Position numbers and translations under genes: made by a program | NCBI GenBank assembly: GCA_016748015.1 | Contig: JAAOMT010000532.1 | Location: forward strand, 3,953 to 48,240 | Source: Geosiphon pyriformis uo1 | Taxonomy: Eukaryota > Fungi > Glomeromycota | Direction of reading: 5' to 3' | DNA: 44,288 bases | In this document: one piece after another, positions 35,427-41,134 of the stretch | Layout: the number at the start of each line of letters is the position of its first letter | How positions within the stretch are numbered: the stretch's first letter is position 1 | Notes under the pieces: generated by a model | Databases searched by the model: none | The model's input: only the letters and a program-made list of their open reading frames with translations | What the model was told of the DNA's origin: nothing

Positions 35427-38400
35427 TTAGAGCCACATTGAAAGCTCGTATCTTTCGTAGTTGTTACGCTCATCATCTTCTATACGAGAGTAATAAGGAA
35501 TCAAAGCATCTTGAGCACCAATATACAATTGGTTATAAATCTTCCAGTATATTTCGCGCACCTTGCGAGCAGGATGAAAAAGCCCCTTGAATTTATTAAT
35601 TTATGGTGAGCCAAAACACAAAGTCTTTACAATTATCCGGGATATAATTGATTATCATACCTGTAAAACATATTGCAATACCGTAGAAGGCCCGAGCGCC
35701 ACACGCAAACCTTCAATTGCTTCCATAACTGCATTAATGACATGTGGTGAAGTTTCAAAAATGTTTGGCCAGACGTAATTCAAGAGATGAAGAAGAGCGT
35801 CTTCACATCCTAGTCCAAACACACCGAGCGACATATCTTTTGTAAGAAAATGTGCGAAGCAAACAAAAAATGTATCAGGGAAGCAGATCAATTGTTTTTC
35901 AAGAATATAAGATTCAAAATGATTAAAAAATAATAATTTACGTTTCACCGTAGTACATGCGGTCTGTCGATGGACCAAATCTCGATCCATCAAAGCATCT
36001 TCTAATAATGGGGTAACCGCATATATATAATCTTTACCCATTTCACCTATATACTCAAATAGAAAAGAAAGAGACTAAAGAATATACGAGATGGAGTCAA
36101 ATTAATAGTCACATGGTAAGGAAATAATAATACTGCATTCTGGATGAACACAGAATTGAGTATTGTACCTTCAGGACTCCATTCTGAACATTCAGTTCTG
36201 GGACACGATATTCATTCATTAACGCAGGTAGAACAGTAAACGGGGCACAAGTTTCAGCCACAATAGCTAAAATTTAATGAAGAAATGGTAAGAAAAGCTA
36301 ATTACAAAATTAACAGTGTTTTAGAAGTTCTTTTGATACGCACCTATAGCGACAGTGGTACAAACCCTGTTTTGGCGCTCTTGAACCTTTAAATTATTTA
36401 ATAAAGTAGCCAGAACGTCTTGTGGGCCAATTGCCTTGGCAATATATCCAAAAGTGTTAACAGTTGCCCGGCGAATACCCTTTTTGTGGGCCTTCAACAT
36501 ATCCAATAATTCAAAGCAAATACGCATCCACTCCCTAGCAGAAACAAACTCTGCCCCCCGATCAGCAATACGACCAACCAAATCAATACAATTATGAACA
36601 ACAACACCGTTTGCTAAGAAAGACTCGAAAACTGGCACAGAGATATCATATACTGGTTCTCTTCCGTTTTTGCAAATATCTATAACTTTTAGGCGCATAG
36701 TAGGGAAGCTTTTGAGAGCCTTGTCTAAGAGAAACTGCGAAGGTTGTTGGTCCGATTGAGAGTTCGCAAACCATGACGAAGCATTTATTTCTGCGAGGAA
36801 AGCCAGATGCCCCGGTAGACAGCGTTTTTGATCATAATGAGAGATAAAATTCTTGCTTATAATACTTTTTTGGTGAAGTTTTGATTGACGGCGCCAATAT
36901 ACGCTGGCCGCTGATAAGCGAAGTTCTTTTACGATAGAGTATCGGAATCCAATGTTTTCAGCAAAATCGAGATTGCTAGTCACCTCAAAATGTATAAGGG
37001 TCAAACCAGAAGATAAATTGTTCCCTAACGAATTAAAGGAGACACAAGTTGTTTGAATACCGAACATTCGTAGTAAGTGTTTAACATCCTTCATATATTT
37101 CGTCGTAGCAGAGATGTTTTCAGCTTGAGTACACTCTGACAAAATAACGTGAGATATAGAGTCGGTTTGGCAGCATGGCGCAACCGCTTTTCCGCCAAAA
37201 TGCCCAGCAATGAATTCTCGGAGTACGGCTTTGGGACAATCTTTCTCTTTAACAAATGAAGGTAATAGGAAGCTTTGGTATGAAGAACCAAATGAAAGGT
37301 TTATCATTGCCTCAGCTAAATCAATAGGAATTTGAATTATCCAATCTTTATCTTCAAGAAAACCGATTTCAGGCCGTGTCCCGGTCAATAATTCGATATC
37401 GTCAACTAAACGTTCTGCATCGTATTCATAAAAACCTCGGGCAAATATTTGAGAATTTCTCGAGTGCCAATTGCTTTTGCTTGTCACATATCCAAATAGA
37501 CGAGCAAAAGCCAAGAGTTCCTCACGCTTGTTAGCGGTCGTGGCATCGAAGGAATATTTCCCACAATTTAAGATATAGTCATGCTCATCAACCTCAGGCT
37601 GATCGACCGGCCCTTCCATCCCGATAGATAAATAAGTTTTATTAGCCAAAAGATTTCGGGCCTCGACCCAGTCTCCAGAATCAGTCAGCAGCCTATGATC
37701 AGGAGTACATTTTATGACCCGACCATCGCTTAAAGTGATTTTTAGAGTTTCTTTGATGCCTTGATCAAGCCAACGGGATTGTTTTCCAACTCCCAAGGCA
37801 GCTTCCTGAGCAATCCATGTGTAAACTTTTACATTCATGGCTTTAAGGTTATCAATTCGACGGGATATTCCACATTTGAGTAATACAGGCATATCCCCAG
37901 TTAAGCAAGATTCCTAAAGTTAGTTAATTCAATATATTAATGTTTAAACAGGATATTTAAAGGTTTGAGAGGAAAAATATTACTGCGACATTGGAACTCA
38001 TGATATCCAAATCTTTATTTATTTAAAGCCATCTATGCTGTTAAAATAATTACAAAATTAAAATGAAGAAGAATACATACCTCGACTTTTTCATGCCGAT
38101 TTTTAAGAATTGGAGTAAGCCGAGGAAGCAAATCTTTAATTGGAGGAGTCATGCTTGACATTCCAATAACATTAACGATTGATTTTAAGCCACCTAAAAT
38201 GGATCCAAGGACTTCTGGATACTCCTCTCCAAGGTACTCGTATAGTACGACACCAAGATGGCCCATTAGTTTTTCCTCACCGCAGTTTTTCATCACGACC
38301 GCAATTCGTGAAATCAGATCCGCAGCTTGTTGACGAACTTTAGCTGATTTATTATTAAGACGCCACAGAATTGTGGAGGTGATTTGTTGAAGATAAGGCT

Positions 38401-41134
38401 TTACTCTAAGGCCCAAAGCATTAACTACAGTGCCAAATCCGTTGAGCATGACAATATCTTCAACCGTTTGTTCTTGAAAAGCATAGAGGATACCATCGAT
38501 CAGTACTTCTTCAAGACGAGTATCGATATCGGCAGCTCCTAATTGACTGACTACCTTCTCAACTGTTTCCATAACCATTTTACGATAGGGTTCTGATTCA
38601 TCTTTGAGATCTTCAACAATACGACCAACGATTTCGGTGACGCCTACTTTTTGAGCCAGCTCTACAGTGGTTTCAACAACCTGTCTATAGTTACGTCGAT
38701 CAAGGGCCATACGACGAACCCAGAAGTTTTTAAAGAATTCAGGCAATATTTCTTCTTTAATGTATTGTGGTTGAACCCCATCGGTCGCAGCGCATTGCTT
38801 AACAACTTTTAAGACAATTTTCTTCATCTCTTCGTCAGGCGATTGAAATTCACGTATCAAAATAATCATAACCTCTTTAGTGTAATAATTGGCATATTCG
38901 GCATCCATCAAGGGTATGATGTAGCCTATGGCTTTTAAAAAGGCAGCAAGCCCTTTTCCACGATGCTTTCTGATTCCAGTCCATAGGGGTTTCAGTACAG
39001 AGTCGAAGGATTCAATGCCGTAAGGTGCCGCAGCTTCGGCTAGAGCTGCGATTGCCAAGGCTGTAATAGTACGGACCTTTTGTTGTTCGTCCTAATGTAA
39101 AAATAAAATAGAAAATGAGTAGATGCATAAACAACTGACTGATAGATTGGATTACAGAGGGACAAAGAACTAAAATAATATACCGACATACCTCTAGACC
39201 ATGAGCAATGGCTTCGACAAGGTTTTTCAAATGGGGCAAGACTGCACAACCCATTAGTATTGCAATTTGTTGAACTATTTTTATACCAGTATGCCTAGCC
39301 TGCCATGATTTTTTACTTTTACACACAGCTTTTAAGAAAGGAAGTAGAGCGGGAATCCCGTGCGCCGATGCTACAACTGAAAAGGCTCGAGCAGTAGTAT
39401 TACGCACATATTCATCCACGTGATCGATATCTAATAAGAGAGCCATGATTGTATTATAAATAGGTTCTCAACAAAAAAGTGTAAAAACAAGCAATACAAT
39501 CGTGAAAAAATATTACCTGGTCTCATTGTAGCTATCATTGTGGGTAGCCCAGCGGCTTTGCTTAGATTACTAATGATTTCACGACCCTCTGTAAAAATGA
39601 GTAGTGATTAGAATAAACATTTGCTGTCCTAAGATAGGATCGAACCAAGCAATAATATTTTAGGCTTCAAAAATATGTAGATAATACTTGCCGCATCTAG
39701 CGAAATAATCTTCATCAATCAAAAGGGGCTCGATTACAACTAAAATTTTATGGACATAAGGACGAACCAATGCGTCCAATTTATATAATATACGATCAAT
39801 AACCTTAACAAGCAAGTGTCTTTCCTGATCTTCAAGATTTTGTGACATTAATAGAGGAAGAATCTGATTGAATAAAGGCCCTGCGCCAAAGTCCCTCGCC
39901 TTATCAGTAATTTGTCGCAAAGCGGTTTTTCTCATTGGTGGCGTTCCATTTTTAATCTTGAGCAAAAGACGCATTATTTTGCGCTCTTTAAGCTCTTCAA
40001 CAGATAATTCGCTTTCATCTTTATCATCAAGCAATTTTCCAAAATGTTGCATATCTTCTTGTTTAAAGAAGGGTAAATTCCCTACGCCAGGTATTTCGGC
40101 GGGCAAATCATAAGTTTGGTTTCGATCTTCTTCTAGCATCACAAATCCCTCAGAGGCCATTGGAGTAGGTGTAGCCATAAGTTTGCGGGCAGCAGTACGG
40201 ATTGGAACATATCCGGATGGAGGATCAAGAATTTTGTAACCACTTGGGGGGAACATGGCATCCAGTTCTTCATCGGTGAGAGGCCTGTTACGCGCATCTA
40301 AATCCTTTTCCCAGCGTTGAGCTGAGGTAATATTTTGATTAGATTTGATTGCATTTTTTTTTAATACTTTGGCGTTTTAGTTAGATAGACAAAATATACC
40401 TTCAGGAGTCATTGGAGCCAAATGGCCTGGTGTTGGCGTGATTAAACCAAGGTTTCCAACGGGAGTGACACCAAATTGAGAATTGCCATTTGCCGGGGTC
40501 TCATCCCATCGAGATTTCTTTGATGAAACCATCGGAGTAACATCCCATCGGCTCCTTTTCCTAGGAGTTTCTACCGCAACATCAGCAGATGCTTTGGGTG
40601 TTTCATCCCATCGAGTTTTTGCATTTAATGCTTCATCATCTGGTTTTGCCCAATCAGAAGTGGGTTTGGGTTCAACAGTTGTTTCCATGTCCCAGCGCCT
40701 TTTTTTTTGGGAGGAGGCTTGTTCGATAGCAGCATCCTTAGCTTCTTTCTTTTTTTCTTCAAGTTTGAGCAAAATTCTTTTCTGTTCTCGTTCAAGCTCA
40801 GCTTCTCTCATGACATCAGCGTAGGAACGGGATTCATCGTTCGCGTCTTCTTCAGCGAATGGGTCGTGACGTTCCGGAGAAATTACCCTGTTCAATCTAC
40901 GTGCATGATAATCACTTTCTCGGTCTACTATTCTTCGGGAAGTATTTTTTTGAGCAAAAGGGTCTAACTCCTCGCCGTCACTAGCTGCTAGATCATTATA
41001 AATTTCCTCAGGCGCTGTGTAGGAGGCTAGACGTTTTGTCCTTTGTTCAAGTTCCTCTGAAAATGAATTTTTTTTAGGTTAAATTGTGAAAATTCTTAAA
41101 CCATGAATTTATGGACACAACCTTTAGCTGACAT
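35427..41134 (-). CDS. SF3B1: Splicing factor 3B subunit 1 (SF3B1/Hsh155/Prp10), intein-containing. Exons: 41134-41122, 41056-40400, 40321-39692, 39588-39517, 39430-39192, 39091-38081, 37913-36344, 36266-36169, 36074-35942, 35836-35661, 35585-35427. Precursor 1585 aa, ~1146 aa after intein removal.
   Basis: ULM repeats (RWDETP, RWDVTP), [72 protein letters not shown]. My manual splice join gives one open frame of 4758 nt. The 13-nt first exon is the least certain. Confidence 0.96.
36591..37907 (-). mobile_element. 439-aa intein in SF3B1 with a LAGLIDADG-type homing endonuclease remnant
   Basis: In-frame 1317-nt insertion between RHEKVEES and [12 protein letters not shown]. Block [14 protein letters not shown], block [12 protein letters not shown], block F EPVYDISV, block [11 protein letters not shown], +1 Cys. 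Confidence 0.96.
39589..39691 (-). other. GC-AG spliceosomal intron in SF3B1
   Basis: Donor G|GCAAGT and acceptor TTTTACAG| restore the conserved DEDYFAR(C)EGREIISNL. Confidence 0.8.

Follow-up and report, generated by a model that had tools for sequence, protein, structure and literature searches.

A predicted class-1 intein and its degenerate LAGLIDADG domain in the only SF3B1 gene of Geosiphon pyriformis

Must the spliceosomal protein SF3B1 of the fungus Geosiphon pyriformis be spliced as a protein before it can take part in the splicing of RNA? The question is raised by a stretch of 44,288 nucleotides (nt) from this genome (strain uo1, assembly GCA_016748015.1, contig JAAOMT010000532.1, positions 3,953 to 48,240 of the forward strand; hereafter, the window). 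Within it, an SF3B1 gene on the minus strand holds an insert of 1317 nt at 36591-37907, which translates as 439 stop-free codons. The initial annotation of the window, made from the letters alone, took the insert for an intein, and the coordinates it gave proved exact. Considering all of the evidence, the explanation that fits best, and one that is very probably right, is a class-1 intein with a degenerate LAGLIDADG domain in a single-copy SF3B1 gene. That the insert is a real, in-frame and translated intein is almost certain.

Residues, profile and fold of the insert

The probability of 439 open codons, calculated from base composition, is 7e-13, and 0 of 20,000 shuffled sequences stayed open. 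The plus-strand frame of the same interval has many stops, and a plus-strand reading was rejected because they occur throughout. The translated minus strand starts with CLTGD (Cys1 at 37907-37905) and ends with ANGVVVHN (Asn439 at 36593-36591), and the C-extein CIDLVGR follows directly, giving the context RHEKVEES / intein / CIDLVGR. The first C-extein residue, Cys+1, is encoded by TGT at 36588..36590 (minus strand). The N-extein RHEKVEES and the complete set of class-1 splicing residues are as first annotated: Cys1, TPDH in block B (T68, H71), VYDISV in block F (D421), H438, N439 and Cys+1. T68, H71 and D421 are invariant in an alignment of 21 sequences, where Cys1, His438 and Asn439 are the majority residues. 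An exact-sequence look-up of the 523-amino-acid open reading frame that holds the intein returned no record.

Pfam places Intein_splicing (PF14890) on the insert with an E-value of 2.5e-12 and 47.3 bits, above the cut-off of 35.8. An exhaustive HMMER search returned 1526 relatives (E ≤ 0.001) among 1.84 billion representative proteins, and the PDB structures matched at the sequence level are mini-inteins as well. An AlphaFold2 model built from the 21-sequence alignment has a mean predicted local distance difference test score (pLDDT) of 87.5 and a predicted TM-score (pTM) of 0.89. Searched with Foldseek, the whole model finds the TliVMA, PI-PfuI and PI-SceI inteins as top matches. The HINT splicing domain (residues ~1-110 and ~396-439) superimposes on the DnaB, DnaE and RecA mini-inteins with root-mean-square deviations of 1.2-2.1 Å over ~98 residues, and the middle domain, of LAGLIDADG type (residues ~111-395), matches the LAGLIDADG proteins I-DmoI and WhiA. 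Translation, profile, homologues, model and structural matches thus all point to a genuine class-1 intein, with a predicted HINT fold and LAGLIDADG domain, as first proposed.

This two-domain architecture is shared with PI-SceI (VMA1), PI-PfuI and TliVMA. Sequence identity to them is only 11-16%, and they are active endonucleases whose acidic residues are intact. A different arrangement of the domains keeps the overall TM-score at only ~0.3.

The host gene and the insertion site

Judged by its sequence, the host is SF3B1 (Hsh155/Prp10), the ortholog of human SF3B1. All of its parts lie on the minus strand of the window. Upstream exons with the N-terminal domain PF08920, identified by Pfam, fall within 39660..40895, and a large N-extein exon with HEAT repeats, which ends in ...NRHEKVE, occupies 38081..39058. 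The reading frame of this exon is open from 39058 and tblastn matches extend to ~39091, which makes 39058 a provisional 5' end. The C-extein part of the intein exon (36344..36590, 82 codons plus 1 nt) encodes residues that align with 1035-1116 of human SF3B1 (5ife_C), 77 of the 82 being identical. The exons on both sides of the insert belong to HEAT families in Pfam, and the N-extein exon fragment has 99% amino acid identity to a partial SF3B1 of Funneliformis caledonium, a related fungus of the Glomeromycotina. The gene was searched exon by exon, and the joined spliced model was used in no search.

Downstream exons lie at 36169-36266, 35942-36074, 35660-35836 and 35427-35584, separated by GT..AG introns at 36267-36343, 36075-36168, 35837-35941 and 35585-35659. 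These introns are removed in a 912-nt transcript contig from the one public RNA run that covers part of the window, and the spliced contig is at least 99% identical to the exons. SF3B1 is therefore transcribed, and the 3' end of the intein exon is fixed at 36344. A script that followed the frame exon by exon met no stop from the start of the intein exon until 35427-35429, at the end of the downstream exons, where a stop codon follows a canonical SF3B1 C-terminus.

Cys+1 corresponds to human Cys1035, or approximately residue 704 of yeast Hsh155, so the intein interrupts the equivalent of Asn1034/Cys1035. We take this site, from established SF3B1 structures, to lie ~36-43 residues before K1071/R1074/V1078 of the pocket that binds the branch-point adenosine and pladienolide.

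Between the large N-extein exon and the intein we infer a spliceosomal intron of 167 nt (37914..38080, minus strand; GTATGT...CTAAC...TAG) from consensus signals and reading frame. The upstream exon ends ...AAA GTC GAG (...NRHEKVE) at 38081, and the intron, with a GC content of 0.24, ends 6 nt upstream of the intein. The intervening nucleotides (37908..37913) are the two N-extein codons GAA TCT, Glu-Ser, where F. caledonium has GAA TCA. We rejected the possibility that this intron is a repeat or an introner, as it has a single match in the genome.

Protein splicing or removal as RNA?

If the intein is functional, the insert would be transcribed and translated within an SF3B1 precursor, as 439 amino acids that interrupt a HEAT repeat close to the pocket for the branch site. 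Excision would follow the canonical class-1 route, in which Cys1 undergoes an N-S acyl shift, trans-thioesterification passes the chain to Cys+1, Asn439 cyclises and an S-N shift completes the reaction. This would restore a contiguous ...RHEKVEES-CIDLVGR... HEAT repeat. SF3B1 would become functional only after protein splicing.

Several observations weigh against this account, in which protein splicing itself is a prediction. Pfam has no LAGLIDADG match for the intein sequence itself, and no protein more than 37% identical to the intein was found in a collection of 15 billion proteins (1.84 billion representatives) or in JGI metagenomes. The RNA contig stops at 36551, 40 nt downstream of the intein, and no RNA read or contig crosses the intein. 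At that contig end, 11 unmatched letters (TCTCGGCCGGG in the sense of the messenger RNA, mRNA) resemble the 3' end of an adaptor used for complementary DNA (cDNA) libraries. Because these terminal letters are adaptor-like, the contig is probably a 5'-truncated cDNA rather than a record of a real transcript end. Ending 40 nt before the intein, it is neutral on whether the intein is retained in mRNA.

Could the insert instead be removed as RNA, either as an unusually long intron or because the upstream intron uses an alternative 3' splice site, in which case no intein-bearing protein is ever made? The end of the inferred intron is only 6 nt from the insert, and the single covering run offers no RNA evidence spanning it. 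However, the insert begins TGCTTA... and ends ...CATAAT, neither GT nor AG, and at 1317 nt it is 8-17 times longer than the introns of SF3B1, which measure 75-167 nt. Its composition is that of an exon: GC is 0.41 and GC at third codon positions (GC3) is 0.35, compared with 0.42/0.35 and 0.43/0.38 in the extein exons and a GC of 0.24-0.32 in the introns. Relative codon use also agrees between intein and exteins (r = 0.84). Given the lack of GT..AG ends, the excess length and the exon-like GC and codon use, removal at the RNA level appears very unlikely. The 439 open codons and the well-folded intein predicted from them further reduce the chance of this alternative to a very slight one.

Of the ways in which a translated intein might behave, efficient protein splicing by an element that is merely a fixed parasite is highly probable. 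A more adventurous proposal is that the immobile intein has been recruited to act as a switch. Protein splicing conditional on redox state or stress would then gate the assembly of the U2 snRNP (small nuclear ribonucleoprotein) and couple protein splicing to RNA splicing, including that of the SF3B1 pre-mRNA itself, with its several introns, one of which ends 6 nt from the intein. Prp8 inteins have prompted a comparable proposal (PMC5784728, PMC6805012). The intein has been kept even with an apparently dead endonuclease, and it sits in a critical HEAT region near the branch-point pocket. However, imprecise loss would be lethal, which accounts fully for its being kept, and no sequence feature points specifically to regulation. 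We therefore consider the switch unlikely.

A single intact copy and a decayed duplicate

Could the gene be dead, and another SF3B1 do the work? We searched the organism's own assembly, which comprises 128 Mb in 792 contigs. The N-extein exon has one match; the C-extein has one intact match and one decayed fragment; and no intein-free SF3B1 paralogue was found in the 128 Mb. SF3B1 is single-copy in this genome. As there is no second intact copy, SF3B1 would have to undergo protein splicing, and the earlier claim that an essential U2 snRNP protein depends on it stands.

The decayed fragment is a partial SF3B1 duplicate on another contig (C404), recovered by the genome search on the plus strand at G000:C404:458447-459309 (L009 6448-7310). 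It runs from approximately residue 229 of the intein through the intein C-terminus, the C-extein and the downstream exons and introns to the 3' end of the gene. It is 70-93% identical at the nucleotide level, carries many deletions and several stops, has no N-extein and lies in DNA of 25% GC. A 30-nt deletion took out the codons at the intein/C-extein junction. A processed retrocopy was rejected, since intron sequence is kept; for the same reason this is a DNA-level duplicate, and it is silent on the mRNA.

The presence of this second SF3B1-like stretch is what would favor an intein that no longer splices, in a dead SF3B1 replaced by a working copy elsewhere. However, the stretch is a fragment with stops and deletions that lacks the N-extein, for which there is a single exon in the genome. 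In the window, the splicing residues are all intact, and the transcript contig shows the downstream introns correctly removed, so this alternative has only a slight chance of being correct.

The duplicate also bears on the integrity of the locus. The nearest relatives of the intein occur on virus-like metagenome contigs, as might be seen if the insert were a contaminant, for example viral, or a chimera assembled at the junctions. Against this, the insert resembles the host exons in composition and codon use, the reading frame passes both junctions without a break, and the diverged duplicate itself runs from intein into C-extein, apart from the junction codons lost to the 30-nt deletion. An artefact of either kind is thus exceedingly improbable. 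The duplicate shows that intein and extein already adjoined each other in this genome long ago. Taken with the host-like composition, it speaks against a recent arrival and suggests a long residence.

The endonuclease domain

Both LAGLIDADG motifs are recognizable and align with those of relatives, and the model has the two-helix LAGLIDADG fold (alpha-beta-beta-alpha-beta-beta-alpha). Acidic metal-binding residues are missing from both motif ends. In the 21-sequence alignment, Lys144 (37476..37478, minus strand) occupies the position of the catalytic aspartate in motif 1 (LFGYVTSKS), and Lys240 (37188-37190, minus strand; HFGGKA) occupies that of the second catalytic aspartate. Aspartate is found at these columns in 13/21 and 8/21 sequences, respectively. 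With lysine at both catalytic positions and no Pfam LAGLIDADG match, the homing endonuclease is probably dead, and the element would home no more.

Is mobility nonetheless conceivable today? The endonuclease domain is present at full length, with a fold predicted by the model, and an empty target exists in F. caledonium. Replacement of both metal-binding aspartates by lysine, the absent Pfam match and the failure to find close relatives all oppose an active endonuclease, and the host-like composition argues for long residence, so that an element mobile now is improbable. A degenerate element could instead persist because a frameshift, a stop, loss of splicing or imprecise loss of the intein would destroy an essential gene.

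An empty site and a restricted distribution

Do related fungi carry the intein? Among named sequences, the N-extein exon is best matched by the partial SF3B1 of F. caledonium, on contig CAJVPQ010009547.1 of GCA_910591825.1. This contig is 81-83% identical to the window in nucleotides and jumps from 38085 to 36590. It reads CAT GAG AAA GTT CAA GAA TCA / TGT ATT GAT CTT, or RHEKVQES/CIDLVGR, without interruption, and so lacks both the intein and the 167-nt intron.

By sequence comparison the source fungus, a member of the Glomeromycotina (arbuscular-mycorrhizal type), is not very close to F. caledonium. Because the F. caledonium site is empty, the SF3B1 intein appears to be lineage-restricted within the Glomeromycotina; it would have entered after the split from the F. 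caledonium lineage, or been lost in that lineage. The empty site also gives assays of endonuclease activity and homing a target sequence that occurs in nature.

More broadly, the intein is rare or absent in the sequences searched, and the site is contiguous in SF3B1 homologues, as expected for the in-frame insertion of an intein. Among 127 database SF3B1 fragments that span CIDLVGR, none contains an intein; all are contiguous, and 118/127 have RHEKVQEN before the cysteine. Searches of JGI metagenomes with peptide patterns from the intein gave 68 pattern matches and 0 relatives. A degenerate DNA pattern for His-Asn/CIDLVGR gave 3 matches in metagenomes, all by chance and in bacterial-like DNA.

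Relatives and a possible viral source

The best relatives are 27-37% identical over the full 439 amino acids and share the motifs CTPDH, LAFARxLGY, REFLGGxFGG, IGFRYC and SFxANGxVVHN. All 10 of the top hits scanned are long proteins with Intein_splicing; seven are ribonucleotide reductase (RNR), family-B DNA polymerase or Rpb2, and one is an SNF2 helicase. Hosts were checked for 20 of the top hits, and Prp8 was not among them. In a phylogenetic tree, a long branch leads to the SF3B1 intein, which groups weakly (86/38 support) with two RNR inteins, in a clade that includes Rpb2 inteins.

The best relatives occur on intron-less, gene-dense metagenome contigs. IMG/VR holds 227 relatives, many on metagenome-assembled genomes of giant viruses, at 23-31% identity over the full length. 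The most likely source would be the large intein family common in giant-virus genes for RNR, DNA polymerase B and RPB2, and a viral route of acquisition is plausible. The LAGLIDADG inteins of these giant-virus and protist proteins are the closest to the SF3B1 intein in sequence; they differ from it in host protein, and the SF3B1 intein is long-branched and has lysine in place of the catalytic aspartates.

The family also occurs in many nuclear-type hosts, among them aconitase, kinases, PP1 and SNF2. Eukaryote-type hosts noted in metagenomes (P0040, P0071, P0136, P0151-P0179) include ~11 aconitases, protein kinases, PP1 phosphatase, an SNF2 helicase, a PI3K/FATC kinase and zf-4CXXC proteins. 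SF3B1 is not a host among the 34 inteins from a region search with the related intein P0040, which are found in aconitase, kinases, PP1, RPB2 and others. This host range suggests one or more intein-rich eukaryotes, similar to the case of Anaeramoeba (PMC10710043).

An earlier SF3B1 intein, and the Prp8 inteins

The initial annotation took SF3B1 for an intein host not known before, and the element for a second, independent entry of inteins into the spliceosome. Neither claim to novelty survives the published record, in which an intein of SF3b subunit 1 is already listed at the same site; the annotation itself had named such a report as refuting novelty alone. Green, Novikova and Belfort (2018, Mob DNA 9:4, PMC5784728) give SF3b as an intein host in Additional file 1 (KOG0213, 1 intein, Heterokonta). 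Their Additional file 2 contains the sequence, from the oomycete Hyaloperonospora arabidopsidis. Its splicing factor 3B subunit 1 (UniProt M4BK12) holds a HEN(-) mini-intein of 150 amino acids, CIAEGT...CTPDHRLL...AAGVAVHN, with a C-extein that starts CIDLVGR. Both SF3B1 as an intein host and the insertion site are thus already known (PMC5784728). For Rhizophagus irregularis, the same catalogue lists only inteins of eIF5B and SRP-alpha. Full-text literature searches found no main-text report that joins an intein with SF3B1, SF3b, Hsh155 or Prp10. Within the searches made, and as far as we found, the Geosiphon element is the first SF3B1 intein in a fungus and the first with an endonuclease domain.

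The two SF3B1 inteins share the host, the insertion point and a class-1 organization, with Cys1, a CTPDHRLL block B, a ...VHN end and Cys+1. They differ in that the oomycete element has 150 amino acids and no endonuclease domain, whereas the Geosiphon element has 439 and a degenerate LAGLIDADG domain, in a fungal host. Their splicing blocks are ~30% identical, by eye from the text of the supplement, which is no closer than the Geosiphon intein is to RNR or RPB2 inteins (36% to P0008), and CTPDHRLL also occurs in five inteins of unrelated hosts. A lesser variant of the adventurous proposal above would trace both to a single homing intein, specific to SF3B1, that crossed between kingdoms, perhaps via giant viruses. 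Occupation of the same Asn1034/Cys1035-equivalent site in an oomycete and a Glomeromycotina fungus makes a test case for cross-kingdom or viral transfer versus independent invasion. With a second natural SF3B1 intein, what was a lone entry in a supplementary table becomes a recurring site in a core spliceosomal protein besides Prp8.

Prp8 inteins are widespread, with 104 known at 7 sites (PMC5784728, PMC6805012). Like the SF3B1 intein, those of fungi, Bathycoccus and others are nuclear and reside at a highly conserved site of an essential core spliceosomal protein, and protein splicing has to precede RNA splicing. Unlike SF3B1, which belongs to the U2 snRNP, Prp8 is a component of the U5 snRNP. 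As with Prp8 inteins, the dependence of an essential protein on protein splicing may offer a handle for selective inhibition or control.

A second intein in the genome

The same genome encodes an intein of 549 amino acids in HMG-CoA reductase (G000:C639:1184479-1185879; L003 826-2472; minus strand), between ...ISLSGNY and CTDKKPAAINWIEGRGKS. Pfam finds both HMG-CoA_red and Intein_splicing in the gene (E 1.4e-16). A literature search found no paper that joins an intein with HMG-CoA reductase as its natural host, and this intein is not in the 2018 catalogue (PMC5784728). It shares only 26% identity with the SF3B1 intein and stands far apart in the tree, so that it represents a separate acquisition; on these two grounds, spread between the genome's two inteins was rejected.

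The HMG-CoA reductase gene has a short GTAAG...TAG intron at approximately L003 750-825 (minus strand), exactly between the terminal asparagine (CAT AAT) and Cys+1 (TGC) codons. Both inteins of this genome therefore have a spliceosomal intron at or beside the insertion site, and the empty SF3B1 site of F. caledonium has none. This pattern might be explained by introns gained at breaks that the endonuclease induced, or by a disrupted homing site.

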